A program made the position numbers and the translations under genes. The notes below the pieces were generated by a model. It was given only the letters and a program-made list of their open reading frames with translations, was not told the origin of the DNA and did not search any database. A stretch of 41,027 bases of DNA, counting the filler, from Orbicella franksi (lineage: Eukaryota): assembly GCA_964199315.1 (NCBI GenBank). It is 2 parts of 2 records of this genome, joined end to end, with 100 filler letters (N's around TTAATTAATTAA, not from the genome) between each part and the next. Parts side by side here need not be neighbours in the genome. Positions count along the whole stretch, not along the records: positions 16,839 to 41,027 come from OZ116700.1; 1 more part is not named here. One strand, written 5' to 3'. Positions 16,839 through 36,600 of the stretch are shown one piece after another (positions within the stretch are counted from its first letter, which is position 1; every line of letters starts with the position of its first letter).

Positions 16839-16892
16839 GCAGGAAGTTTGTGATTGAAAGTTGTCACTTATTTTGATTGACAAAACATGGTG

Positions 16893-17250
16893 GATTATAC
16901 ATAAACAATAGCCTCCATTGGGCATGAAAATATGCTTGGATAAAATATTATTTGTCCACGGACATTATCTGTTCTGAGAAGCAAATAGTTTTCCAAGAGC
17001 GTAGCTCGAGGAAAATTGTGAGCTTTGAGGAACAGATAATGTCCAAGGACAAATATTCAAGCATATTTTTGCACCATATGGAGGCTATTGTGTTTATTAT
17101 CCTTCAAATATTTTTCGCCACAAGCACAGTTTAGAAAATTAGGGAGTATGCTCGGATATTCCCCAGTTTTAGCGGGGGAATATTTGATCACTTGACGCCT
17201 TTAGACCAATCGTGCATGAGCGAAAACATTTGATGGATTATAAACAAATA
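16893..17250. repeat. Interspersed repeat (aaacaatagcctccatt...atttgatggattataa family)
   Basis: Resembles a repeat I recall as abundant in coral genomes (ggacattatctgttc, gagctttgaggaacagataatgtcc, ggaggctattgtgttt). Contains local inverted matches. Boundaries approximate. Confidence 0.55.
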
Positions 17251-17949
17251 TATTACATGTTACCATGCATCTGTTCAATAATTGATCACAGATCAGTGTT
17301 GGAAACTGCTGTAAATTTTGACAGCACTCTCCTTTCGGGCATGTGACTCTCAAATTGCACTTACCTGGTATAATTTTCACTCGCTCACTCAGAAAGATGC
17401 CTCCCCTCCTAAAAAATCTCTGCATTAATTTACAAACCATATGTTTTTTCAGTATCTCTTGATCACATACGCCCAGCTGGTCATTTCATGTTGAGCTTTG
17501 TTGTTCTGGCCCATTTACCAGACGCCTCTTTAGGATCGCGGGCCGATTTTACTGTTTTACTCATTTTTTGTCATCAACTTTTGACACTCTTGGGAAATAT
17601 TTTTATATTGCCAAATTCACATATCCTGAGAATCGAGATATGGGAGTAAACAACTTGTCAGCAGGTGGATTAGCTAGCATGATGATTTTCTTTCAATGAA
17701 AAATTATTCTAAAAGACCTTAAACTCAAAGATAACTACAACAAAGGTACTTTTATTTTCAAAACAGTTCCTACATGTATTCAAGACCCTTCACGATCTTT
17801 GAGATTCATTCCTTAACAGGCAACCATCCTTGTTCCTAGAGAGCAATGGTATCACTTCATACACAAGTAACCATTACTTAGTTTATCACTGCTAGGAAGC
17901 CATATTTCATTTTGCCTAAATTTATCAGGCATCTCAAAAGCTAAGATAG

Positions 17950-18765
17950 AAATAAATAAATAAATAAATAAATATACATTTATATAGCGCCATTTTCCAC
18001 TAATTGTCCATGGCGCTTTACAATACTTTAAAATTAAAATCCTAATTCTTTAAAAACCTAAAATCCTAAATCCTAAAAGTTAAAATCCTAAGAATTAAAT
18101 ACGCTATATAATACAATTAGGCTACAAATAAAAAGTAAAAACTACAAATCAAATGCACGCTTAAAAAGATAAGTCTTAAGATTAGCCTTAAAAACTGCCT
18201 CTGATGATGAAAGTCTGATCTGGAGGGGTAGTTTATTCCAGAGCCTTGGTGCCGCCACGGCAAAAGCCCTTTCACCATACGTTTTAAGATTTGCTTTAGG
18301 CTCATCAAGCAACCTGTTGTTTGAAGATCTTAGTGTCCGACCAGAAATGTTAAATCGCAGTAGGTCTCTAATGTAATCAGGGACCAGTCCATTCAGAGCT
18401 TTGTAAGTTAACAACAATATTTTGAAAATAATCCTAAAATGAACTGGCAACCAATGTAAGCTCCTTAGTATTGGTGTGATGTGTTCCTGCCTTCTAGTCA
18501 AGGTAACAAGGCGAGCTGCTGAGTTCTGTACAAGCTGAAGTCTATTAATCAGATACTTTGGGAGACCGTACAGTAGGGCGTTACAATAGTCCAAACGCGA
18601 TGTTATGTAAGCATGAACAATAGTCTCAGTAGTACTCTGGGATAGGTATTGTCTAATTTTAGCTATACTACGAATGCGGAAAAATGCGCTCTTGCAGTTT
18701 ATTTTAACATGTTCTTTGAAATCCAAACATTGATCGAATGCAACTCCTAAATTCCTGGCCTGTTT
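17950..18765 (-). mobile_element. 5'-truncated non-LTR retrotransposon (L2/CR1-clade LINE): RT C-terminus, 3'UTR and (TTTA)n tail
   Basis: Minus-strand ORF 18142-18763: ARNLGVAFDQCLDFKEHV...SRLDYCNALLYGLP...LQLVQNSAARLV...LHWLPV...YKALNG...RAFAVAAPRLWNKLP...FKANLKTYLF. The 3' end reads gtaaagcgcc...ggcgctatataaat followed by (ttta)n (plus strand 17950-17972). The ORF-track N-terminal 30 aa are flanking sequence. Confidence 0.92.
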
Positions 18766-19282
18766 ACTAGGCTTGGTAAAAAAACTAGGTAAAAAAAGCA
18801 CTGGTCTAGAGATATCTTTGCGAAAATGGAAAATATAATGGAGCATTATCAACATTCAAGCTTAAAAAATTTCCCAAGAATGAAAATCATGCTCGCCAAA
18901 TGGGCAGGTGATCGATGATTTGTACTCACCTAACACTTTTCACACTTGCATTGGCGAGCAGGCAAGTGCTTATTTCTAACACTGCAGTTGATGTCAGAAT
19001 GTGGCAAGGACAAAAAATTCGCACTCAATGTGATGGCAGAGTGTGTCACTGATGTTGTTACCACACTGTGAAGTCTTTGTTATCAATTACCAAGTTAAAG
19101 TAGGAATTTTATCACAGCTATTTAATGTTGTTATCTTCTTTTACTCCCTTCAAACTTGATTCTCCTCCTAGGGGGAAAGAATGACTAGTCCCTTTTTTGG
19201 CTCTTCATTTACTGTAAACAATATAGCAAGCAGTAATTCATTAAGGACACTGTAAATCAATTTTGTAATCTCTCTTATTTAG

Positions 19283-20035
19283 TATTGAAGGTAAAACCAA
19301 GCATTACAAAGTGAGCTGTAAAAGAAACATGACTTTTACCATCAATGACAAAGAGTACTTTGACAATATCACTGAGATGGTTACGGTAATATATGATCTA
19401 ATAATTTGTTTTATTCTTAATTAATTGTCTGAACAATAGGAAAACAAACTGTAGTAATAATACCTCTTCATTTAGTCATTTCTTAACAACACAATTTTTC
19501 TTATCACTTTCTTCTGCCTGTTCTATATATTATATCAAGAACCAGTTTTCTTTTTCTGCATACATTGTGCATATTAAATAGCGATTTTGCATGCAAAAGA
19601 GAGATTTCCAAAGTTTGACTTACATGCTGACCAAGCAGGTGTTTTATGCAACTTTGGTTTCACTGTAGCTGTGTCTGTAAAAGCAAATCAACTGAATGAT
19701 TAAAAGTGACCTTGGGAAACTGCAAAACTAACATGAACTACTGCATTGTAAAATTGTACAGTATGCTTTCCTTACCTGCAGAAGATGTTCCTAAGGACAA
19801 TTTTGTTATTAAAGATATCGTATGCCGTTTGAATATGTTTTAAAGTATTTACACGTACATAAGAAATCTTATAAATTAATATTCATCATTTGGATGTTGT
19901 TTCTGATGAAGTTACCTTTATCACAGTTCTACCAGAACAACACAGGATGTCTGCCAATTGAACTTACAGAACCTGTCTGTAGGTGTGAGTTCAATGGCGG
20001 CAGTGCTGATGATTCTTCTCAGCATACAGGAGAAG
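19283..20035 (+). CDS. SH2 domain 1, C-terminal two exons (Csk-like)
   Basis: IEGKTKHYKVSCKRNMTFTINDKEYFDNITEMVT|FYQNNTGCLPIELTEPV resembles the Csk SH2 C-terminal half (CDGKVEHYRI...IDEEVYFENLMQLVEHY...GLCTRLIKP). The W..G/FLVRES exon was not found. Confidence 0.75.
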
Positions 20036-23000
20036 GTAATGTCAGGGAATTCTTCTTAGTAGCATTCAATCACTATACAAGAAATAAACATCAATGACAG
20101 GTTACTCAGCGGGCTGCATGGTCAAGTGGTTTAGATTTCAGTAATAATTAATAATTACTCACTGAAGTGGAGGTAAATATCCATCACTTTCACTGACACT
20201 GAGGTGAATAATTGTTTTAGTATATACCACTCAAGCTGAATAATTAGCAGACCAAAACATTATTTTATGTGTGACAAGCGGTCGGAAATTTTAAAATCTC
20301 TCTTGCCGGCTGCTCGGAGGTGAATAGTACTTGCTAATCACCTCGGAGTTAACCAACCAGAGCACTCGAAAAGCACTATTCACTTGTGTGGTATATACTA
20401 ATTTCAAATACAGACCAATCATGCAATGCTTTTGAGTGGTATTATGTATACCATATGATATCCCACAAGTCACTTGCATATTCTCAGTACATGTATACAC
20501 ACATGGCTTTAAGAAAATACAAATGACAAGTGAAATATTGAATTCCATGGTGTATCATGATAAAGTGGTGCATAACCATTTGTTTATCAATTATAATGCT
20601 ATCGAAAATACAGTGGTGACACAATCAATGCATTGCATCATGAGAATGTTGGGTGTAATGATGTGGATAATACAAGGCTTTCCTGTTTAAAAATTTCCAA
20701 TTGCTTGCATTTTCCATGGCATGGTATAAATAATTATTATTATATAATAATTTGTAGTATTCATTATTTAGGCATGTTCCATTGATCATGCACAGGCTTT
20801 CAAAATGTTTTGAAAATATTCACAGAAATCCTTTTGTTTGTTTTTAGAGTTTTTGAAATTAAATGAAATGTTAAACTTTCTAACTTAAGCGAGTTGCTTA
20901 AGTCTGTATGCAAATCTCACCATCACCAGCAACATACACTGTAGAGGCCAAATAATGCCTTTATTCAATTTAGTAATAATTATTGCTTATGTAACATTTG
21001 CTACCTTTGTAAAGAAAACCATAATGTAACCAGCAAGTAATACTTCACTTACAATCAAACTACATTAAAGACCTTTCAACATTTTGCTTTATTTGCCAGG
21101 CAACACACTGCCAAGAGCTCGACTTCAAACAAATGCAATCTCAGAAATCCAGCTTCGTGTGATAGTTGAGTCAAAGACATTCTCACTTCTCACAAGTCCT
21201 TTTAATCAAGTGCTTACCCTCAAAGAGCAGGTAGAAGAGTTAAGTGGGGTGCCTGCAGACTGTCAGTTGTTAGAGCTGGATGGCAAGCCATTGGTGATGG
21301 ATACTTTTCTTCTTTGTGACTATCACATCATGGAAAACTCAACAATTTACGTTCAAGTTCACCCTTGGAATGAGGAGTAAGTGCTGGGCAGTATGGCAAC
21401 GAACTGCATACACATGTAGACTTTGTTTGTTAAATTTTACCCGACATTTTTGTTCTTAAGTTAATGTTAAACTTAATTAAATAAATGTTCGGGGCTGTCA
21501 ATCAGAGCTGTAACCCATGGCACCTGTTAAGCCCCGGCCAAACAATCCCAACATTTGAACACAACACATCGCAACATTGTTGGACGCAACATGTTGAGTG
21601 TGTTTGGCCTTCCTGTTGCAATGTGTCGCGATATGTTGGGTATTGAAAATCAAACTAGTGCACATGCCCGGGCACAACATTGTTGCATGAACCTGGCCAA
21701 ACGATTACAACATCATGCAACATCCACAAATGTTGCATGAAAAATTTGACCATTTTCAAATTTGAGCCAACAACACCCAACATATTGCAACATGTTACAA
21801 CGAGTCGCAACAGGGTGGCCAAACATGCGCAACATGCTGTGCCCAACAATGTTGCAATATGTTGAGTTGAAATGTTGCAATCATTTGGCCGGGGCTGTAC
21901 AGCTGAGTATGCTTGATGGGCCCTTGTTGGTACAGCTGAACTTGCCTGTAAGTGGTATAATTCACCATAAAGTAGCAAGTTTGCTACAGGTGTGAAGATC
22001 AAGGCTATAGATGAATCAAAACTTATTGACAGCCCCCATGTTATTCATTCAACTGATGTTCAAACTCCTACACTTAGTTATCAAGTTTGGCTTTTAGAGT
22101 TACTTCACCCTCTTTCTTTCTTTCTTGTTCAAAGATGGATGCCCCATACTGATAATAATAATACTGACAATGACAATGACAATGACAATGACAATGACAA
22201 TGACAATGACAATGACAATGACAATGACAATGACAATGACAATGACACTGACAATGACAAGGACAAGGACAAGGACAATGACAATGACAATGATAATGAC
22301 AATGATAATGATAATGACAATGATAATGACACTGACACTGACAATGGCAATGATAATGATATATAAATTATATATTTAGAGACATATTATATTATATAAT
22401 CATGCATGGTTTCTATGTCAGAACCTTCCATTAGGACAGATTATCCTATATTCAGTACATTGTACCTCACAAAAAGTCATGTGTTGTAACATAAAACAGA
22501 TGTGATCAAACACAATTTGGTAAACAGATACATAGTACCAACCAGTAGTCCATGTCATTGCGCATGTCCTGTTTTGTTGACACAGCTGGTACGTTGGTAA
22601 AATGTCAGCCAGTGATATAGACTGTGTTGTCAGTCAGCTCAGTGATGTTACAGATGGAATGTTCCTAGTCAGAGAAAGCATATCACATCCAGGATGTTAT
22701 TATCTTTATGTCTGGTGAGTTAGATTATGGTAGGAATGAGCAAAAAAACTCATAAGATGTGTGACACTATGCCGATAAATTAGATATGACGCTCAAAAGG
22801 CTCTTAAAAGTGTCAAATAGTTGCTGGTTAACTAAATGCTTCGGGCTTAGCCCGAAGAAGAAGGGCTTAGCCCAGAACATTTAGTTAACCAGCAACTATT
22901 TGACACTTTTAAGAGCCTTTTGAGGCTCATATTTAATTTATGATTATGGTATTGTGTCTTGAATATCCGTAAAGTTTCATTTATTTTCCTAATGTGAGTC

Positions 23001-26000
23001 AAAAACATTAAGATGAAATCCGATAGGAAATCAAGCAATTCAGCTTTTAGAGGACAGAAACCTTGAACCAGAATAATTTTAAGTATTTCTATGGTCCTTT
23101 TTTCATTTTTTAGAAGCTTAAGATACAAATAGTTGCCTGAAAATAAGCAAAATAAATTTCACAGGTAACATTTCACTATTGTGGTCATTTCGCCAGTACT
23201 GTCAAGTGTTTCAATATGAACTTCAAAATGCTTTTCAACATCTGGTGTTGTTGGTAATTAAAACAGTCCCACAGACGTTTGCAATACAATGTAAAAAATC
23301 TTGGTACAAAGTTTTACTCCACTTGATTCCTTGTTAAATCTTAATAATTAAGATTGAATTAATTCCCATTTGTCATAAATTAGCCAAATTACCCTAAGTA
23401 GATGAGAAGCAAACACTTAAACCTTTCAGCCACTCAGCTGTCAGTACTGGGCTAATTACACCTCAAGCTCTTTGTATTGCTGTATCCACAGGTGTAAAGG
23501 CAAGTCAAACCACTACAGAGTACTCAACAAGAAAAACATGTTCACTGTTGATAACAAGCAGCAATTTAGCAGCTTGTCTCATCTGGTAGAGGTGAGCTGT
23601 GAATAATGATAAGTCAATTGTCTGAGAAGTACACTGTATATTAAGGTGGCTGGTACCAGTTTTCTCGCGCGGTGAGTAGATCACCATCATGCGTCATGCG
23701 TGAGTAACACGTACGATAGAGGCGCAAGATTTAAAACCGGAAAGTCCCAAACAAATATGGCGGCGCGGGGCTTTTACCTCGCACGGTCACTTTAGTACGG
23801 AATTCGCATTTAAAGGAGGCTTTACCTGCTAGAACAACTTTAGTCAATTCTGTGTATTTAAGAAAAATTGTTTCGGGAATTCAATGTTTCCCAAATTTCA
23901 AAGGAAACTTGATCGATCTTGACAGCCACCGGAAGCGTATAAGGGACTCGCAAAACATCGCAAATCTACCCAGAATTTGTGTGAAAATCCTACAGAGTAA
24001 GCCCAGGAGGTTGTCTTTAACAACAACTACAACTGTAAATGAAGTTTTAGCAGCAAACAAAACAAAACGCCTGTTCGGAGCCCGCTCGCCTGTGCAGGCA
24101 CACGAAGCAGTCAGTGGTAGTCAAAACAGCTCATGAGCAACTGCTGATCTTATAAAGTCTGGATTTTTGAATGTGTGTCTATGCACGTGGGAGTAACGGA
24201 ACTCGCGAAGGCTTTTACATGAAAGCAAACCCAGTGACCCCTTTTTTTTATTGTTTTAATATAATATTATTGAGAGGAAGCATCAGAAAAAAGGTAAAAA
24301 ATACTACGGAAGGAAATTTGCACTTCGTGCAAATTGTCGTTTTTCCAAGTTTACAAGAAATTGGCTCCGTAAAATTATTTTAAAATTGTTGTGCATATTC
24401 ATTTTCTGATGCCAAAAGCTATTGATTAAAGGGTCACCGGTCAATTTTTTAGTTATTAGTGACATAAGCAAAAAATCAGGTCTGGAAAATCATTTTAGAA
24501 TGTTGCCATGGTAACTACTGACAACAAAATAACAGCTTATTTAGATCAAGTATAAATTATATAATCCAAACTTACAAAAATATTACAATGGCCCTGGTCT
24601 GCCTTTTTGTTCTATTCTTACAAAGTTATGAGCCGTCAAAAACCTGAAAACTGGTACGAGCCACCTTAAGTTAAAGATCTAGATAAAGAAAAGAAAGGGA
24701 TATCTAAGCTAGGTTATCCAGTGGATATAAGAAAGAGAGGTATTGAGGTTGAGAAAAGGAAGGAGGCAGGCAGGTAAGAAGAAGCTCATATGCTCTCACA
24801 CGAGGGAAGGAGGGACTGAGCGAGAAAAAATGGTTATATTGGGTTACATTTTTGCATACAGGAAGTACTGATTGAATTGTTTTCTTAACTAGAATATTAC
24901 TGTGAAACTAGACCATTGATATTTACTTTCCAGTATTACAAACACCAGCGTGGTTCTCTGAAAACACAACTCACTAAGCCTGTGAAATTGGACAAAGAAC
25001 AGAGAGGTAAATGCAGATTATATCTTATTATTTTGGTGTGAATGGTAAACACAATTTGAAGTTCAAGAGTTTTTACATGGAGTTGCATACAAATAGTTGT
25101 TAAAAGTATTCTTTGATATATACAGAAAGAGGGAATCAGAGTACATTGTATCCAATTTTGCCTTGTCTCCTTTAGTACTCATCACTCTTTACTGTATCAA
25201 AAAATTGCCAAACAGAACATATTTTAAAAAGAAATGTATGGTAATCAGTAACTAGAGACTGACTGGCTCAAAACAAGTATTTCTCACACACCACTGGTAG
25301 CAATGTTAAGCTGACTGCTGCAGCCTGACCTTTATTGCAAAATCAAAGCTAATACAAATAACGAAAACACCTGTACATTATACTTTAAAATCTTCCGGTG
25401 AGTGGGTGGGAAAGTCGACAGTGGCAGATGCAACAGAAAAGACTGCCCACCCCACAGGTGACATGACCGATACCAAGGCCCCTAGCGGTGTGTGAGAAGA
25501 ACATTTTTCACTTATGTCATTCACTCAGCCAGTGAAAAATTACTCTTCTCTGTTTTGCAGGTCTTATTCCACCAGCCATTCTTGCAAGAGGCAGTAAAGC
25601 CAAAGCAGCATACAGACGAGCCTTAGAACGTGGTAAAACATGTGACATCCGTGTGCGAGTCATGCTGATTGGACAAGACCATGCGGGTAAGACAAGTGTT
25701 AAGAGATCTTTGAAGGGTGACAAGTTCAACAGAGATGAAGCCAGCACAGCAGGAGTGCAGATGGACCTTCCCTTGTTAAGCGTTGGAGAACGGCCGTGGA
25801 AGCCAGCATCCCAGTCTGATGAAACAACTACTGTGTTTGATCATAAGAGTGCACAGCTAGTGGCTCGGCAGCTGTCAGGAAGTTCTGATGAACTGGAAGA
25901 GCCGCCCACCAAACGCAGTTCTTGTGATATGCTTGAGGAGTGTCCTGTAGAAAAGAAATGTCATGCTAATGGAGTAGGCAGCTCTGAATCTAATGCTGAT

Positions 26001-29000
26001 TTGGAAAAGTTTCATTCTCAGACCAGTGTTCTATCCAATGGGATAGGAAGCTCTCAAGGTTCACCACTCTCCCCACCCATGGGAGGTAAATATCAATTTG
26101 GATTATGTGTAGTACTAAAATTAGCACTTAGGTTGTAGAATCTTAGAAGTGGTGCGAGTTAAAACATGCAAGTTAGTAGGGACTGACTAGGTACATGCAG
26201 TTGTAAGTCCTACTGTGAAAGGATTTTATGAATCAAAGTACTTCTAAGTACTTATTTTTAGAAACTAATTTTCCATTTTACGCAACGTTTTTGATTAAGT
26301 TTGTTTTTTGTTTGCATCTTTATTTGTTTGTCTTGTGTGCTTAATTAATCCTTGTTGTAGTACATCAGCAGGGAAGTGAAAATAATGGCAATGATGTTGT
26401 ATGCCCCTGACTGTTCATCAACCAACTGTTTTGTTGTTAGCTTGGCACTGTCATTTTGTAGTTTAAAGGTGAATTTCCACATTCGCGTCTTCTCGCGCGT
26501 GTTGAACCACATTTATTTTTTTCCATGGACCTAGGCCGTCCAGTTTTTAAATTTCATCATTTTATTTAACACGATTTTTACTTTGAAATTCAAGCCATTT
26601 AACGCGGGTGAGATAACGTAGCAGTGGGAATTTCGCTTATATGTTTTCTCCTAGAGTGTGCCAGGTTTGGCTGTGTACATAGTAACTGGTTACTTTTCAG
26701 TGCTTCATTGATGTTCATTTAAGGATCCTTCCTTAAATTCCAACATAAGGGTGAAAGTTGTTTGTCACACACAATCATTTCTCCTTGTCTTTAGCAGTGA
26801 GTCATATGGAGCCTACCTCGCCAATCTTTCAAGATGAAGTGTTCACTAATGATCACGATCCGTTTGGTGATCTGCCACAGGAGATCATCAGCTTGGTAGA
26901 AGGTATCCTCGTACAAGACAATCAAACAACTGCAGTCGACGAGATATGGCCAGTAATCTGGGACTTTGCAGGCCAATCCCTTTATCATGCCATACATCCG
27001 ATATTCATGTCACGGGAGGCTGTATATCTGTTGGTATCTGACCTAAGCAAAGACCTGTTCCAAAGGCCAGACACTCGTGCAAAACCTTGTGAACAGTCGC
27101 GTGAGCGGGGGATGGAGATGTCAAACAGGGGCGACTCCGGTCTTGATCATCTCATGAAATGGATGGACTTGGTTCATTCTTTTCAGGATCCCAGCAGTGT
27201 GGATTCCGTAGACATTGCTCAGCCACCTGTCATATTAGTTGGAACGCATGCAGACAAAGTGGTCGGTGATCCATGGCGCGTTATGAATGTCATCTTGGAC
27301 AGTTTTGAGGGAAAGGCCTTTTCATCGCATATTGTTGACGAGAAATTTGTGGTCGACAATACTCGTGCTGGTCAACCGTTTCAACATGAAGATCAAAATG
27401 TCCAGAGGCTGAGGAAGAAGATTCTTTCCGTAGCTGCAACGTTACCTCACACAAAGCGAGAAATTCCTCTGCAGTGGCTTCGCGTTGAGAAAGTACTCCA
27501 TCGGCTAGCCAGCAGTGGCGTCAAGCACATTACTAAGACGGATTTCAAAGCCATTTCTAACAGAATATGTCAGTTTGAATTCCAGGAAGATAGTGAAGAG
27601 CTGCTTCATTTCCTGTGTGATTGTGGTGCAGTTCTTTACTTCAACGAGGCTGACAATTCCAGCAGCTTGGTTATTCTGGACCCACAGTGGTTAATCAATG
27701 TCTTTTGTCAAATCATAACTGTTGTTCCAAGCAAGAAAGAACCAATGCGAATCCGTGAACATCGCCGGACCCTTGCTAAAGATGGCATCTTGTCCCAAGA
27801 ACTTATCAACTATGCTTGTCAGAACCTCAGCCTTTCACTTTCCCAAAACTCGCTTCTTTCGATCATGGAAAAATCCAACCTCATTTGTCGCTGGGATGTT
27901 CAGAAGGACAAGGTGCTCATTCTTGTGCCTTCAATGATGACTGCCAAGCCAGAAGAGGAAATATCAGGATTAATTTGCCAAGGCTCAGTTGGACCAATTT
28001 ACATTCAGTTTCACACTGGATATGTGCCTTATGGCTTGTTTTCCAGATTCCTTGTGTTGTTTGGTCAGTACGCCTCCCACGATCTTGCTGCCCGACCGCC
28101 CAAACTTTCCGCAAATGCAGCCCGATTTTTTATTTGTAAGAGAAACAACTACAATCTGACGTTCGCTTGCTTCAAGAGTGTCATCACAATTCATTTGGTT
28201 CATGAGGGCAAGTCAGAGGACGGCCAAGAGACTGTTACCATCTGTCAGCAAGTCTGCAGGTTTGTAGAACTGGAGTTTGAGCAAACCTTTTAGTTTACCG
28301 TAAAGGATCCCTGTCAGCCACACGTTTGTTTTTGTTTACATGCGAGAGTTTGGCCGTTATATTTTGTTCCGAGCATGTCAAAACAAAGGAAATCACTGTG
28401 AAACTTTTAATATTTTCATTGAACATTGTGATTTTTTTTTTAGCAAGAGTGAGTACAAATAAAGATTGATTGATTGATCAGAAATGCGAACCATTTAACC
28501 GAAAATCCCGGAAATTCCGAGATGAAAATCAATAGGAACAGAAATTCCCAGAAAAAATTTTCGGAAATTTGGGTACAGCTCGCGGATGTGTCCTCTTTTC
28601 CGAAAACTGTGGAAACTGTTGTTCCATTGGCCACTAGACATTTCTGGGAATGTTGAATGGAAAGCACCCTACACTGTCATAATCCTGTTTTTTGTGTACG
28701 TTACACTAAGCTTAACCAATCAACTATTTGCGCGTGGTTGATTTGGTATAGACGAGTACATTGTTCGTGTTATTATGGGGGGTCTTATTTGACTTCATTT
28801 TTTTCCTCTGTAAGTGTATAGCTTGGACGCGCATGTATTTTTAGCGCGAGGATCACCGTATGTGTAGTAATGGTTGATTATTGTCGTCTTCAGTTTTGTT
28901 GAAGACATTCTTCAGTTTCTTGCTGAGCAGTGTCCATGGCTACACTCCATGACATGGCAGCTGTGTGCTCGCTGTGATCTGTGTGTTGGTGAAGATGAAG

Positions 29001-30551
29001 ATCCTGAGGGCTGTTCATGGCATCATGTCCACTCCTGTCTTCACCCTGACTGCGCGCACTTCATTCCCTTAGCCTCACAACCTTTAAGATGTGATAGGAC
29101 CTATAAGCTGAACTCCGTACTTACTGTGGACAAGATTCAACCCTGGATGAAGGTACGTACAAACTGAGAATAATCTACTATTACAGAATCAATCGTGAAG
29201 GATTTGAAGTCTGCCTGGGTTGGCGTTGGGTTTGTTCTCCACAAAACACCTTTTCAGGTTAAGTAGCCATTCTGTAAGTTGTCAGTGTAACTTGGATATA
29301 ATGGACTGTTTGTAAGTTGATCCAGGGACGAGGTTTTTTCCAAACATTGACGATTTTCATCTCTCAGGCTGAACTGGAACTAGCCCACTAAAGAGAATGG
29401 TGCACGGCTCAATTTGAAGATTTTTTAGCTGCCTTTATGACGATCTAGGTTTAATTCTATTTGAAGTCTGTTCTACGGATTGTAATAACTTTTCCAAGAA
29501 GCCTTAATTACATGAGACTGACACAAGTTTGTGGTTTATCAGGAGAACTGTCAAGTCAGTAAACCTCAGTGAACAGTGTACAATGGTTATATACAAAGCA
29601 ATTGTAAACAATGTTCGACTAAACGGCTTTGAAAACAAGGTTGATGAGTGCACGAGTGAAAGGGACATACCTTAAACATCCCTGTTTTAGAAAAAGTTCA
29701 ATGTTCTTGCTAAAGATATCGTTTAACATAATCGTGCTAGCTTTTAGTCGTTTTAAAGATTAAAGTTTTTATTAATGTCCAATATTTGTTTTCTCTTCGT
29801 TTCTCAGTATTTCGACTACAGAGATCAGAAAACAGGTAAACGTGTCTTGTAGCCTGATAATAAAATCTTTCAGTTTCTAAAGAGTAAACATGGTGTACCT
29901 ATGGGAATAAAAGCTAGTTGGTGATACAGTTGTGAAGCTGGTGATTCAGTTGTCAATGAGTGGTGTAATTTTATTGTAGAGTTGGTAAGTAGTAAAGGAA
30001 AGATCGGCAAGGTAGGAAAATTTCTCCTTCCCAGCTAAGATTCTAGTGTTTTGTGCTCATCCCTAATCTGGTAGACTTTCTTAGTCTGCAGTTAAATGTT
30101 GAGTGGGAAGAGTTGATTACGATAAAAATGAATGTTGAGGAATGTAGCTGCTATTCCATATCTACCTGAAAATGAGTTATTTACACAGTTTCCAAAGATT
30201 GAGCGGTTATGCTTTTAACTTGATACAATTGATTGTCTTGTAGATGGACTTCGTTTTAAACCTGGTCTTGTTTCCAGTAATGATCTGCTGCACATAGCAC
30301 GTGACGTGGGCGTACAGTGGGATTCATTAGGTCGCGTTCTGTTGGGTGAGAAGGAAGTGGAACACATTGACTACGACCAGAAGACACTGTTTGAAAAGTG
30401 CTTCGGTATGCTGACTAGCTGGACAAGAGCTCGAGGATCCAGTGCTACATACGCTGCGTTGGGACAGGCGTTAATGCAGGATCGGCACACACAAGATCTT
30501 TGTTCAAAGTATTGCTTGGCATCGCAGGGAGTGCTTGAAAGTAGTGTCTGA
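19283..30551 (+). CDS. Multidomain ROCO protein: SH2 (5'-incomplete) - ubiquitin-like - SH2 - Roc GTPase - COR - Cys/His-rich segment - Death domain; at least 11 exons, at least 1124 aa
   Basis: Exons 19283-19385, 19927-20035, 21100-21376, 22586-22714, 23492-23591, 24934-25006, 25561-26085, 26795(or 26798)-28259, 28894-29152, 29808-29835, 30244-30551. All are GT-AG and phase-compatible, giving one open frame to TGA 30549-30551. AATAAA at 30687. That all exons form one transcript is inferred from frame continuity. Confidence 0.8.
20150..20402. repeat. Interspersed repeat (gaggtgaata/cacctcgg family)
   Basis: Recurrent gaggtgaata and tatataccac motifs in both orientations. Non-coding. Confidence 0.5.
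21100..21376 (+). CDS. Ubiquitin-like domain exon (phase 1 to 2)
   Basis: IQLRVIVESKTFSLLTSPFNQVLTLKEQVEELSGVPADCQLLELDGKPLVMDTFLLCDYHIMENSTIYVQV matches the ubiquitin-fold pattern (LKxxIxxxxGIPxxxQxLxxxGKxL...L.DY.I...STI). No C-terminal GG. The donor GA|gtaagt overlaps the ORF-track stop. Confidence 0.85.
21529..21896. mobile_element. MITE with AGCCCCGGCCAAA terminal inverted repeats and internal caaca/tgttg palindromic motifs
   Basis: Left end aagccccggccaaac; right end atttggccggggct. ~370 bp, no coding capacity. It explains the six overlapping spurious ORFs at 21498-22002. Confidence 0.85.
22165..22360. repeat. Hexamer microsatellite (TGACAA)n with TGATAA/GGACAA/TGACAC variants
   Basis: Directly visible tandem array of about 30 units. 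It produces the poly-DN, poly-TM and poly-SL ORFs and is intronic in the Roco model. Confidence 0.97.
22586..25006 (+). CDS. SH2 domain 2, complete, three exons
   Basis: WYVGKMSASDIDCVVSQLSDVTDGMFLVRESISHPGCYYLYVW|CKGKSNHYRVLNKKNMFTVDNKQQFSSLSHLVE|YYKHQRGSLKTQLTKPV. Shows the WYxG start, FLVRES signature, HYRV strand and F..L..LVE.Y helix. Exons 22586-22714, 23492-23591, 24934-25006. Confidence 0.92.
22792..22924. repeat. Near-perfect foldback (about 50-bp arms) with two central GGGCTTAGCCC motifs
   Basis: ctcaaaaggctcttaaaagtgtcaaatagttgctggttaactaaatg is the exact reverse complement of catttagttaaccagcaactatttgacacttttaagagccttttgag. Weaker similarity extends ~30 nt further on each side. 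Confidence 0.9.
23641..24669. mobile_element. Non-autonomous TTAA-specific DNA transposon (Kolobok-like), 1021 bp
   Basis: TTAA|GGTGGCTGGTACCAGTTTT at 23641 and AAAACTGGTACGAGCCACC|TTAA ending 24669 form 19-bp TIRs with 1 mismatch and a TTAA target duplication. Purine-purine termini fit Kolobok better than piggyBac (CC-starting). No transposase ORF. Confidence 0.85.
25281..25498. mobile_element. MITE (~220 bp)
   Basis: Inverted ends ttctcacacaccactgg and ctagcggtgtgtgagaa. Confidence 0.6.
25561..27460 (+). CDS. Roc GTPase domain (two exons, with long low-complexity insertion)
   Basis: Pre-Roc helix IPPAILARGSKAKAAYRRALERGK; P-loop RVMLIGQDHAGKTS; switch I STAGV; G3 IWDFAGQSLYHAIHPIFM; G4 LVGTHAD; FVVDN. 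Confidence 0.92.
26464..26640. mobile_element. Probable short MITE
   Basis: Imperfect inverted ends taaaggtgaatttccac and gtgggaatttcgctta. Confidence 0.4.
27461..28259 (+). CDS. COR domain
   Basis: IPLQWLRVEKVL...LLHFLCDCGAVLYF...VILDPQWLINVFCQII...GIL...LVPSMM...PYGLFSRFLV follows the COR-A/COR-B pattern. Confidence 0.88.
28483..28671. mobile_element. MITE fragment (ttccgg/ggaaattcc; end gaatggaaagcacccta)
   Basis: Resembles a coral MITE end I recall (reverse of tagggtgctttccattcaac). Non-coding, in an intron. Confidence 0.5.
30244..30551 (+). CDS. Death domain terminal exon
   Basis: DLLHIARDVGVQWDSLGRVLLGEKEVEHIDYDQKTLFEKCFGMLTSWTRARGSSATYAALGQALMQ shows the death-fold pattern (W..LGR.L....I..I......E....ML..W....G..AT...L..AL). 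Phase-1 acceptor at 30244. Confidence 0.88.
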
Positions 30552-33673: not shown

Positions 33674-36600
33674 ATGGCGGACGGACTTGATACCTGCCGG
33701 CAAATTCTTCTAGAGAGATTTCCTTCAATAGACGACGATCTCTTCCAGTATGTGACAGGTAAATGTTTCACGTATTATTTTTGTTCAAACGGATATTCCT
33801 GATTTCTGTTCGGCTCGCTAGTTTCTGTGTGACAGCCCTGCTTCACTTTTCGTGAAATCTTATATACGTATACGTTTTCAGTGACTTTTGAGATAGGAAA
33901 GGTAATCTCAATCAAGTCTTATGTAAAGTTAAGTTTTAGATCGTTGATTGTGGATATAATCATATTCTTGGGCATGGTATTGATGTCGTGTTGACTCTTG
34001 GTCAGGTTGCGGCTTGGAAGTCGAGTCAATTTTCGTACGTCGCGTTTTCTACAACTAGGGCTTACACTTCAATATCGTTTTAGTTCCGGTATTTCATTGT
34101 TTTGGATTACGTAACAGGTTTTAGTTGAAAAACATCATTGCCGGGTACTATAAGATATGCTGGTTGTCATTCTTTGTTTGGGATTCAAATTATATCGTGA
34201 TATGCCAATAGTCAGAGCGAAATCAGACCTCTTAAATAATCTTAATTTGATTTGAAATAGTTTATTGGATTGCTTGAGGTCTGAGCTGTTTGAAACTATA
34301 GAGGGTTCTTAGCTGATAAGGAATGTGTAGAGCTCTCAAATTTTAGAGATTACATGATGTTATTTCGTAGTTAATTAGCCTTGTCTAGAGATCTTGTGTG
34401 AAAGAAATTTCCTGGTCATTTTAGCTCAGCAGAAAGTTTAGGGGTGACTTCCTACAGATTCTTGCATGTAGTTGCAAGGAATTGACAAAGGTTCACCATT
34501 CTTAGCTGTGTTCTAAATCTAAATATTATGTCAGCAACATCCAGAGGACATCACGCCAACCCTGGGTTGTGTGGGTTATCAGCTGAGTGCAAGTACTACC
34601 CAAGGATCTTAGCTGATAGGGGTTACCTTGGAGTCTTACTCAAGGGTCTTAGCTTATAGAGATAACTTAGGGATCCCAGTTCATTAAAATTACGTAGGAT
34701 CAATAAGTTGACTGGATTGCCTTGTTTTTATAGCTAATAAAAATAAATATACCTAGAGATTACACAGTAGCTGACAGAGATAACCTAGTAAGGATCTTTG
34801 TTCATAAGGAATGTACCCAGATATAAATAACTAATAAATATATTGTGTATTACATTACTAACTACTTATTGACTGAGAGTGAGGCCTTTATGGGAAAATC
34901 TCAAACCCAGACCTTGCTATATTGACCTCGCTATCGCTCGGTCAATATGGCAAGGTGGAGGTTTGAGATTTTCCCATAAGGACTGAATGTTTGAGGTTAA
35001 TAAATTGTTTATTATATGGCTTTTTGCCTAGCAGTCCTTGGAAGCTCAACTTGTCAACTACAATAAACAAACTGACCTATCAGGGCACTTAACTTTTTTT
35101 ATTTTTAGTTAGCCCTATGGAACTTAGTAATCTCATTCTATAACTAAACAAGCTTTTTATTATTATAATATATGCCAAATATATCTTTCAAGCTTGGAAA
35201 TTTATTAGTAGTCGGTTTAAATATGCATTTGCAAGCACTGATGGTTTGGAACATTGACTTCAGACATTCTTGAAAGTGGATCAGATGATTTTGAGAGTGG
35301 TGAAGATATTCACGATGCTGTGGGGAGTATACTCACAGAGGTGGCAGGAGATGAAGGAGAAGAGGACATCATTGACATTTGTAACCAACTAATGGGTGCT
35401 TTAAAAGGGTATGTAGAAACAAGCAATTGAATTTGTAACAATTTTGTATATCCTCAAAATATGTTGGAGATTAATGGGTAGTATACTGGACTCAAGATTA
35501 AGCAGTCTGGTTTTTGGGGAATTTTTTGAGAGAAATCAAGTACATGTATTACTGGTACTGTAAGAGATAAAATTATCGTATTACCTGTAATTTAACCGTT
35601 ATTTAAGTAGTCATGCTAGCAAGAGAATGATGTTCATGCTGTTACATCATAGTCACTGGAAAATTGGTTTTCCTGTACATGCTGGAAAGTGTCTTTTTCC
35701 ATTTGGGACCTTTTCATTTATATAAACATCAGTCAAAATCTGGAAAAGAACGATCCATGCAAATTAAACTTTTTTTATTGCAATTCGGTGCTAGAGTTCA
35801 ACAACATCATGAGAGTGACAGAGACTGAAACGTCTACACAGATGTCACTCAGAAAAAGACAGCAAATATGTCTATGTCAGTATTAACAGAATTAGATAAA
35901 ATTAGACTGTACCTGATGATTTGCGTCTAGCCAATTAATAACTGGATACTTGAGTTGTGTAAGGCTACCCTGATTATTCATATACAGATGTATCAATTTT
36001 TTTAATAGCAGTGGATGCAATGGCACAACCACAGATCAAGGGAGGCACAAATTACTCCAAGCCCCTGTCAATATGAGAGAGATGGCAGAAAATTTAGGTA
36101 ATAGCTCAAACTGCATTTACTAGTCAATAGCATGGCAAGTATATATACACCACAGGAAGTCAAACAGTGTTTGAGATACGTGAAGTGAAATGTATGTTGG
36201 AAGCACCAAAGCTGTGTGAAATTATAATTCAAGAAATGTTCACTGGAACAAAATCTGTGTTACATGTGCTATTGAAATTATAAATTAAAGTTATACAACT
36301 CTGTGTGTCTTCAATTTTCAAGATCATGGCACAAAGCCTGCATTTATTTTATCTCCCCTTTATTGACCTACAGTGTACAATCCTAGTCAAAATTCCTTTA
36401 AACACTTCACACCACACTCCTTTGCAATGTTGTTACATGTTGCTTTCCAACAATCAAGCAGACGAAACAACATTCTAAAGAGGTGTGGGGTGTTCAAAAT
36501 ACATGTGTTTGAAGGTTTATGACCAGAGCGTTCGCCTTCTAATAAGGAATTGATTTCAGAATGATTTCAACCTATGTCAAAGGGGAAGGGAAAGTCTGCG

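Follow-up and report, generated by a model that had tools for sequence, protein, structure and literature searches.

A stony-coral ROCO protein with an N-terminal array of ubiquitin-like and SH2 domains: gene identity, conservation, and a tentative signalling role

LRRK2 and DAPK1 are among the ROCO proteins of medical importance, and what feeds into the GTPase switch of such proteins upstream is poorly understood. Does a coral gene connect SH2 domains directly to this kind of switch? The question is raised by positions 19283-30551 of a 41,027-nucleotide stretch of DNA from Orbicella franksi (assembly GCA_964199315.1; we call the whole stretch the window). The window has two parts, and the part that concerns us here, 16839-41027, is from OZ116700.1. 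A preliminary description of this interval, made from the sequence alone, proposed a hidden gene in which SH2 and ubiquitin-like (Ubl) domains are fused to a Roc-COR GTPase and a Death domain. We are almost certain that the interval contains the last eleven coding exons of the gene known in Orbicella faveolata as LOC110045263, with the architecture that we describe below. Our best explanation overall, which we consider fairly probable, combines this gene identity with a role as a kinase-less, GTP-gated adaptor.

The 16839-41027 part of the window looks like animal DNA with long introns (GC content of ~37%). Stop-free segments of the + strand show similarity to SH2, ubiquitin, Roc, COR-A, and Death domains, at the places that the preliminary description had named. 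Reading the splice sites gives eleven exons on the + strand (Table 1), with an AG acceptor and a GT donor at all of them. As had been proposed, they splice in one frame, which has 1124 open codons and a stop codon at 30549-30551, and the quoted junction peptides (...HPWNED/WYVGKMS and ...DKEQR/GLIPPAILARG) are exact. The product matches residues 208-1331 of RefSeq XP_020606516.1 with 100% identity, micro-exon included. XP_020606516.1 and XP_020606517.1 (1331 and 1330 amino acids) are isoforms X1 and X2 of uncharacterized protein LOC110045263 from O. faveolata, and the open reading frame (ORF) of the large exon shares a 90%-identity cluster with both. The isoforms differ by one alanine because of a NAGNAG acceptor (TTTAGCAG) at 26795/26798. 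The gene is already in RefSeq in full, as an unnamed, uncharacterized protein, and Pocillopora verrucosa also has a full-length model. It was not hidden, and the expectation that annotation would split or miss its exons did not hold for these two species.

The window holds only the eleven 3' exons; the first 207 residues are encoded upstream of position 16839. A three-frame search of 16839-19282 for the N-terminal half of the first SH2 domain (SH2-1), with its FLVR and WYxG motifs, did not find it, so we place it upstream of the piece. An RNA contig from run X4 reaches ~840 nt 5' of exon 19283-19385, which also puts the start of the gene upstream. We took the N-terminal 207 residues from the database protein and from the loci of other species.

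To see if this is one gene or two neighbors, consider the RNA. We aligned contigs and reads of several runs over 19900-25899. Single contigs of 3591 nt (run X1) and 3875 nt (X4), as well as several contigs from X13, align with no mismatches. In three runs, there are single contigs that run from exon 19927 to 25899 and further. Contigs of three runs carry the junctions 20035/21100, 21376/22586, and 25006/25561, which the preliminary description had singled out, as well as 22714/23492 and 23591/24934, and the skipped parts are all GT..AG. The last of the singled-out junctions (25006/25561) joins the second SH2 domain (SH2-2) to Roc; RNA depth is similar on either side of it, and one assembled transcript holds both parts. 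A raw-read run (X23, 12% sampled) gave only partial, repeat-derived matches and no coverage of the exons, which is not evidence against expression.

These contigs argue against an artefact, in which a Ubl/SH2 adaptor and a Roc-COR-Death gene were joined by read-through or by an error in the gene model, or against a decaying, lineage-specific fusion that has no function. Exon-level ORF calls from metagenomes list the parts separately and some annotations are truncated, which could be read as favoring an artefact, but we found no support for it. Furthermore, the reading phase across the SH2/Roc junction is kept in all eight of the other loci that we recovered, intact full-length ORFs persist in species where identity to the Roc-COR exon of the window is down to 58-92%, and the ratio of nonsynonymous to synonymous substitution rates (dN/dS) is below 0.55 everywhere. 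We consider an artefact or a decaying fusion to be extremely improbable. As the preliminary description had it, this is one gene.

The relatives of the large exon are graded from 92% down to 58% identity, and then there is a drop to 47% or less. The eight relative loci, from assemblies of coral genomes and metagenomes (L001, L004, L005/L007, L006, L008, L009, and L010), have the Ubl, SH2, Roc, COR, Cys/His, and Death exons in one order, as far as their DNA reaches. (L002 was dropped as an informative locus because it has no upstream sequence.) Annotated proteins with the same set of Pfam domains, full-length or partial, are found in P. verrucosa, Stylophora pistillata, Oculina patagonica, and Desmophyllum pertusum, and in transcript assemblies as well. 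Full-length annotated models exist for O. faveolata (two isoforms) and P. verrucosa, while the models from Stylophora, Oculina, and Desmophyllum are truncated. The exon with the C-terminal end of SH2-1 (19927-20035) is kept in L004, L005, L006, L008, and L010, and the exon for the third Ubl domain (21100-21376) is 63-83% identical in orthologues. In pairwise comparisons, dN/dS lies between 0.06 and 0.53 for all domains, with the Roc core at the low end and the SH2 domains and an insert that is predicted to be disordered at the high end. The Ubl/SH2-ROCO fusion is conserved in every orthologue that we recovered.

The next gene downstream also matches. An exon at 35254-35415 (+) is 89% identical to an ORF with a PWI_ABCF3 domain (PF26051) downstream in L005, and matches one in L008. 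By this similarity, the exon belongs to the next gene, which is of the ABCF3 type. Because an ABCF3-type exon lies downstream in the window, in L005, and in L008, these are orthologous loci with conserved microsynteny.

The full 1331-amino-acid protein has the architecture Ubl-Ubl-SH2(1)-Ubl-SH2(2)-Roc-COR-Cys/His motif-Death. The order SH2-Ubl-SH2 in the preliminary description was right, but two further Ubl domains precede it at the N terminus. The 207 residues that are missing from the window comprise these two Ubl domains and the first half of SH2-1, as seen in XP_020606516.1 and in the orthologous locus L005/L007. In L005/L007, a single 5' exon encodes Met...HPWEE, and the orthologue's first exon matches ubiquitin (PF00240) with E = 7.4e-13. 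In the window, Pfam searches with single exons found SH2 three times (E from 1e-7 to 4.6e-4), ubiquitin (1.9e-10), Roc on two exons, COR-A (7.6e-17; 62 bits, cut-off 35.3), which directly follows Roc, and Death (1.2e-3). In the full-length protein, SH2 (PF00017) matches over two stretches with E = 5e-38, and Roc scores 49 bits (cut-off 27). The Pfam scan of the full-length protein found no kinase and no ankyrin domains, which agrees with the earlier description of a kinase-less Roc-COR-Death protein; the layout is not that of the DAPK family.

Predicted structures fit this architecture. An AlphaFold (AF2) model of residues 1-470 has a mean predicted local distance difference test score (pLDDT) of 70.9 and contains three beta-grasp units and, as its pattern of secondary structure suggests, two SH2 units. 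A linker of ~30 residues after SH2-1 has pLDDT under 50 and is predicted to be disordered. The best matches of this model in the PDB are linear tri- and tetra-ubiquitin and tandem-SH2 proteins (Syk, ZAP-70, and SHP2 are among the top). None of the three Ubl domains ends in Gly-Gly; they run straight into the next domain (...NLARKRD..., ...HPWKED-WFHGK, and ...HPWNED-WYVGK, with the exon for the third ending in HPWNE); they are built-in domains rather than conjugatable modifiers. A model of residues 472-1331 has pLDDT of 72 and a predicted template modelling (TM) score of 0.68, and its 38 best matches in the PDB are all LRRK2, LRRK1, or prokaryotic Roco proteins. Its Roc-COR part aligns with TM = 0.66 to the RocCOR tandem 3dpu and with TM = 0.68 (root-mean-square deviation of 3.8 Å) to the whole COR domain of 3dpt.

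As read from the sequence, the GTPase motifs of Roc are intact: G1 is GQDHAGKTS, G2 has its Thr, G3 is WDFAGQ, and G4 is THAD. In an alignment of 24 family members, these motifs (GxxxxGKT, Thr, DxxG, and THxD) are invariant or nearly so. The helices before Roc are conserved too, while the insert of ~130 residues after the switch-I Thr is poorly conserved and predicted to be disordered (pLDDT under 50 for model residues 107-199). Between COR and Death, at 28940-29060, is a Cys/His motif whose columns are invariant or at least 90% conserved in the same alignment and which is present in 25 of 90 long family members; it probably binds zinc. For the Death domain, a profile built from 13 relatives matches solely death domains in the PDB (RIPK1 at 4.5e-8, TRADD, FADD, ankyrin, and PIDD), all 13 relatives match PF00531 (best E = 3.3e-10), and a Nematostella paralogue has a Death domain that shares 43% identity with the exon. 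The model has a helix bundle in this region (model residues 770-848).

Where did the N-terminal array come from? Among representatives of 50%-identity clusters, 3879 are related to the Roc-COR exon at E ≤ 0.001. No similarity to the SH2 or Ubl exons was found in the best 150 of these. Instead, the paralogues have N-terminal kinase-SH3, NACHT, HEPN_DZIP3, CAP-Gly, Neuralized (with Death-TIR at the C terminus), TPR, or RING domains. They are from Nematostella, Actinia, Exaiptasia, Montipora, Acropora, and echinoderms (Asterias and Amphiura). Examples of these homologues are Nematostella vectensis LOC5519146 (A7RN40) and LOC116614441, Actinia tenebrosa LOC116302196, and Asterias rubens LOC117297937. 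The anthozoan and echinoderm paralogues are 26-47% identical to the coral protein over Roc-COR and 43% in the Death domain, and they also have the pre-Roc helix, the Cys/His motif, and the same module border. Many of them start to match at 25566, 5 bases into the exon that begins at 25561, after a phase-1 intron, so the border of the module is an exon border. As judged from these alignments, the family is large, spans anthozoans and echinoderms, and pairs a conserved Roc-COR(-Death) chassis with N-terminal modules that are interchangeable and attached at an exon border.

One paralogue, L003, seemed at first to match SH2-2, but this was due to extension of the alignment: L003 is a TPR-Roc-COR paralogue without an SH2 domain. 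At L003:1205-2827 (+), at least eight TPR repeats and the Roc P-loop are in one exon. Unlike the SH2 version, it has no intron at the module border.

The array itself grew by duplication. The introns of SH2-1 and SH2-2 have matching positions and phases (2, 0, and 1); exons 21100-25006, which encode the third Ubl domain (Ubl-c) and SH2-2, form a 579-nt cassette between phase-1 introns; and at both steps from Ubl to SH2 the sequence is HPW-x-E and then W-[YF]-x-G-K. From the shared intron positions and the phase-1-flanked cassette, we conclude that a Ubl-SH2 unit was duplicated in tandem and that the array was joined to the chassis by exon shuffling. We also used the first 470 residues as a query, in one search as the bare sequence and in another as a profile, and scored in each the 8000 candidates that shared the most words with the query. 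Among these, the Ubl/SH2 module was seen only in stony-coral proteins. Outside of stony corals, there were only single-domain matches (to PLC-gamma, Abl, CSK, HTK16-like proteins, and polyubiquitin). We take all of the named sources of the module to be corals of the robust clade. In sum, LOC110045263 is a single transcribed gene under purifying selection, and a stony-coral-specific member of this anthozoan and echinoderm family.

A similar origin has been proposed elsewhere, for brown-algal LRR-Roc-COR genes as immune receptors that were diversified by exon shuffling (PMC11378527). The shared concept is an expanded family with a Roc-COR core and shuffled, exon-delimited recognition modules. 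The algal genes are from another kingdom, and they involve LRR modules only, with no Death or SH2 domains.

What might the coral protein do? We tentatively propose, at somewhat less than an even chance, that it docks to a single phosphotyrosine site via SH2-2 and acts as a GTP-gated adaptor. The protein would be kinase-less, and its N-terminal Ubl/SH2 array would recruit it to an upstream partner. SH2-2 would be the docking site for phosphotyrosine, while SH2-1 (which has FLVK) and the three non-conjugatable Ubl domains would offer additional or non-canonical binding surfaces. Roc-COR would act as a nucleotide-dependent dimerization or conformational switch, as in LRRK2 and bacterial Roco. The C-terminal Death domain would relay this state by homotypic death-fold assembly, leading to cell-death or NF-kB-type immune signalling. 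The roles in immunity, symbiosis, or cell death that the preliminary description had suggested are conceivable. By analogy, the layout (a sensor, then a nucleoside triphosphatase (NTPase) switch, then a death-fold adaptor) is like that of NLR proteins, with Roc-COR replacing NACHT.

This proposal depends on the binding pockets of the SH2 domains, which we compared across 8 full-length orthologues and the genomic loci that reach the exon. By its residues, only SH2-2 has a canonical phosphotyrosine pocket. It has Arg at betaB5 (the FLVR position) in the window and in 7 of 8 full-length orthologues, Ser at betaB7 in 7/8, and a basic residue at betaD6 in 7/8, which fits the SAP-like class. In SH2-1, alphaA2 is Arg in 7/8, betaB7 is Ser in 8/8, and betaD6 is basic in 7/8.

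Several observations weigh against the proposal. The betaB5 residue of SH2-1 is Lys throughout: in all 8 full-length orthologues, and likewise in L001, L005, L008, and L010, which are all four loci that reach the exon. In SH2-2, the Arg was lost in two lineages (it is Thr in P0375, a transcript-derived orthologue, and Lys in L001), and the His at betaD4 is not conserved. With Arg lost in two lineages and betaD4 variable, what is conserved may not be the reading of phosphotyrosine. The SH2 and Ubl exons also evolve faster (dN/dS of 0.2-0.47) than the Roc core (0.08-0.15). At the other end of the protein, the window's Death domain on its own scores 19.4 bits, under the Pfam cut-off of 22.6, and in all three contig-based runs the RNA contigs stop precisely at the donor that follows 29152. 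For the step from exon 28894-29152 to the Death exon, the support comes from the RefSeq model, the orthologues, and the reading phase. Micro-exon 29808-29835 is needed because it keeps the Death exon in frame: if it is skipped, the frame shifts, a stop comes after 17 codons, and the Death domain is lost. The contig ends and this frameshift hint at an alternative isoform, so a Death-less form, with alternative splicing at 29152 and 29808-29835, is possible.

Of the orthologues, L001 has diverged the most, its Roc-COR exon being 58% identical, and each of its two SH2 domains has Lys at the FLVR position: FLVKES (L001:531-650) and FLIKDS (L001:3818-3949).

We therefore also considered that the Ubl/SH2 array might be a phosphorylation-independent scaffold, for instance for intramolecular autoinhibition of Roc-COR or for partners of the ubiquitin-receptor type, on what is otherwise a plain Roc-COR-Death adaptor. 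This would explain the Lys in SH2-1 of all orthologues, the Thr or Lys in SH2-2 of two lineages, the relaxed constraint on the SH2 exons relative to Roc, the variable betaD4, and why alphaA2 of SH2-2 is never Arg (it is His in 1/8). Also, the modelled Ubl array superposes on linear tri- and tetra-ubiquitin. However, the pocket residues that SH2-2 retains in 7/8 full-length orthologues speak against a scaffold. And in SH2-1, the Lys is invariant rather than drifting, and it is accompanied in 7/8 by the Arg at alphaA2 and the basic betaD6. Phosphotyrosine binding without the FLVR arginine has a reported precedent in the "FLVR-unique" SH2 domain of p120RasGAP, a study that is cited in the reference list of PMC7530234. 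We consider a pure scaffold somewhat unlikely.

The preliminary description had instead favored docking on doubly phosphorylated tails that resemble immunoreceptor tyrosine-based activation or inhibitory motifs (ITAM/ITIM), as in Syk, ZAP-70, or SHARK. In its favor, a single chain carries both SH2 domains, the N-terminal profile has an HTK16-like SH2-Ank-SH2 kinase as its best multi-domain match, and structures of tandem SH2 domains (Syk, ZAP-70, and SHP2) are among the top fold matches. But SH2-1 lacks the FLVR arginine in every orthologue, and the spacer is a predicted-disordered linker plus a whole Ubl domain, instead of the rigid coiled coil of Syk. Furthermore, there is no kinase domain in any orthologue. 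Given the Lys in SH2-1 and the loss of Arg from SH2-2 in two lineages, a bidentate, Syk-type reader is very unlikely. Single-site docking by SH2-2, tentative as it is, remains the reading that we prefer.

It is useful to compare the coral protein with known systems. HTK16/SHARK (SH2-Ank-SH2-kinase), Syk/ZAP-70, SHP2, and p120RasGAP are the comparison set for tandem SH2 domains, and in HTK16/SHARK-like proteins the two SH2 domains are also parted by another module. The SH2 sequences closest to the coral domains are from CSK, RasGAP, SHP2, and HTK16-like proteins; with CSK among the best matches, the earlier term "Csk-like" was fair. Unlike these proteins, the coral protein has a ubiquitin-like spacer, FLVK in SH2-1, and no catalytic domain of a tyrosine kinase or phosphatase. 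DAPK1, a characterized Roc-COR-Death protein, shares the order of Roc, COR, and C-terminal Death domains and the ROCO-type GTPase motifs. But before Roc, DAPK1 has a calmodulin-regulated kinase and ankyrin repeats, while the coral protein has no kinase and has three Ubl and two SH2 domains; and only the coral protein has the Cys/His motif between COR and Death. The closest structures to the coral Roc-COR model are LRRK2, LRRK1, Roco from C. tepidum, and Roco2 from M. barkeri (Foldseek E from 1e-14 to 1e-7), with TM up to 0.66-0.69 on crystal structures of RocCOR and COR. LRRK2, LRRK1, and the prokaryotic Roco proteins share the P-loop, DxxG, and THxD motifs with the coral protein, which differs from them in having no LRR, ankyrin, kinase, or WD40 domains, a predicted-disordered insert between switch I and G3, and a Death output. 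The anthozoan and echinoderm paralogues differ at the N terminus, where (in the best 150 of 3879) they have kinase-SH3, HEPN, NACHT, CAP-Gly, Neuralized, or TPR, not SH2 or Ubl.

The preliminary description knew of no characterized SH2-Roc fusion, and we also found none in the searchable literature: our search yielded no paper on an SH2-Roc fusion, this gene, its orthologues, or their locus identifiers. This combination of domains is undescribed in that literature, and it is present in RefSeq as an uncharacterized protein. A bolder claim would be that this is the first protein in nature to fuse a phosphotyrosine reader to both a ROCO GTPase and a Death domain, so that within one polypeptide a tyrosine-kinase signal is GTP-gated into death-fold (apoptosis or NF-kB-type) assembly, and that stony corals gained it when exons were shuffled onto a Roc-COR-Death chassis of the immune type. 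Taken further, the head-to-tail Ubl array might mimic linear poly-ubiquitin and attract receptors of ubiquitin chains, and the Death output might be turned off when the 28-nt micro-exon is skipped in a regulated way. We rate that claim as a whole as unlikely.

Table 1. Coding exons of the coral gene in the window, with the evidence for each.
Feature	Position	Strand	Evidence
Exon, middle of SH2-1 (betaC to alphaB; HYKV)	19283..19385	+	AG/GT; Pfam SH2 4.6e-4
Exon, SH2-1 C-terminal end and low-complexity linker	19927..20035	+	RNA contigs begin at 19926/19927 and join 20035 to 21100
Exon, third ubiquitin-like domain (Ubl-c)	21100..21376	+	Pfam ubiquitin 1.9e-10, 40.8 bits (cut-off 25.4); RNA junctions
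Exon, N-terminal half of SH2-2, FLVRES (Arg at betaB5)	22586..22714	+	Pfam SH2 1e-7; RNA junctions 21376/22586, 22714/23492
Exon, middle of SH2-2 (HYRV)	23492..23591	+	Pfam SH2 8.7e-5; RNA junctions
Exon, SH2-2 C-terminal end, followed by a phase-1 intron	24934..25006	+	RNA junctions 23591/24934, 25006/25561
Exon, pre-Roc helices (GLIPPAILARG...), Roc G1 P-loop GQDHAGKTS, switch-I Thr, insert	25561..26085	+	Pfam Roc
Exon, Roc G3 (WDFAGQ) and G4 (THAD), COR-A, COR-B	26795..28259	+	Pfam COR-A 7.6e-17, Roc 7.1e-7; predicted fold like LRRK2, LRRK1, and C. tepidum Roco
Exon, post-COR Cys/His-rich motif (CxxC...CxxH...C...CxH)	28894..29152	+	Family alignment; no Pfam match
28-nt micro-exon (YFDYRDQKT)	29808..29835	+	Best splice sites among phase-compatible candidates; in XP_020606516.1
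Last coding exon, Death domain and stop codon	30244..30551	+	Pfam Death 1.2e-3 alone; profile and relatives

The first exon in the table is preceded by a phase-2 intron and has an alternative GT at 19380. We dropped the corresponding exon end (19379) in favor of 19385, as the donor after 19385 gives 100% identity to XP_020606516.1 and an intron position that matches SH2-2.

We noticed a few other features of the window. In the intron upstream of exon 19283, at 18142-18855, is a 237-amino-acid ORF on the minus strand with no match in Pfam; it seems to resemble the C-terminal tail of ORF2 proteins of retrotransposons that lack long terminal repeats. The intron between Ubl-c and SH2-2 contains a long microsatellite of the hexanucleotide type (22140-22370), which would encode Asp-Asn, Met-Thr, or Leu-Ser repeats, depending on the frame; as a repeat, it was passed over in the RNA alignment. 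Within the introns, 20100-20500, 21500-22100, and 25297-25547 have RNA contig depth of up to ~2100, with many mismatches and with loose ends on both sides. These look like dispersed repeats that are transcribed elsewhere, outside this gene. For the ORFs downstream in the window, the Pfam search gave no match.

The value of this finding is limited in that RefSeq already contains the gene, only stony corals have the Ubl/SH2 version, and the function is predicted from sequence. A natural ROCO protein with SH2 and ubiquitin-like inputs and a death-domain output may nevertheless offer a simple case for how a phosphotyrosine or ubiquitin-type signal could pass through Roc-COR to death-fold signalling. 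More broadly, anthozoans and echinoderms have a large family that is built like innate-immune receptors: a sensor that varies, then an NTPase switch, then an adaptor of the death or TIR type, with Roc-COR rather than NACHT as the switch. This Roc-COR family may be relevant to coral immunity, symbiosis, and disease.

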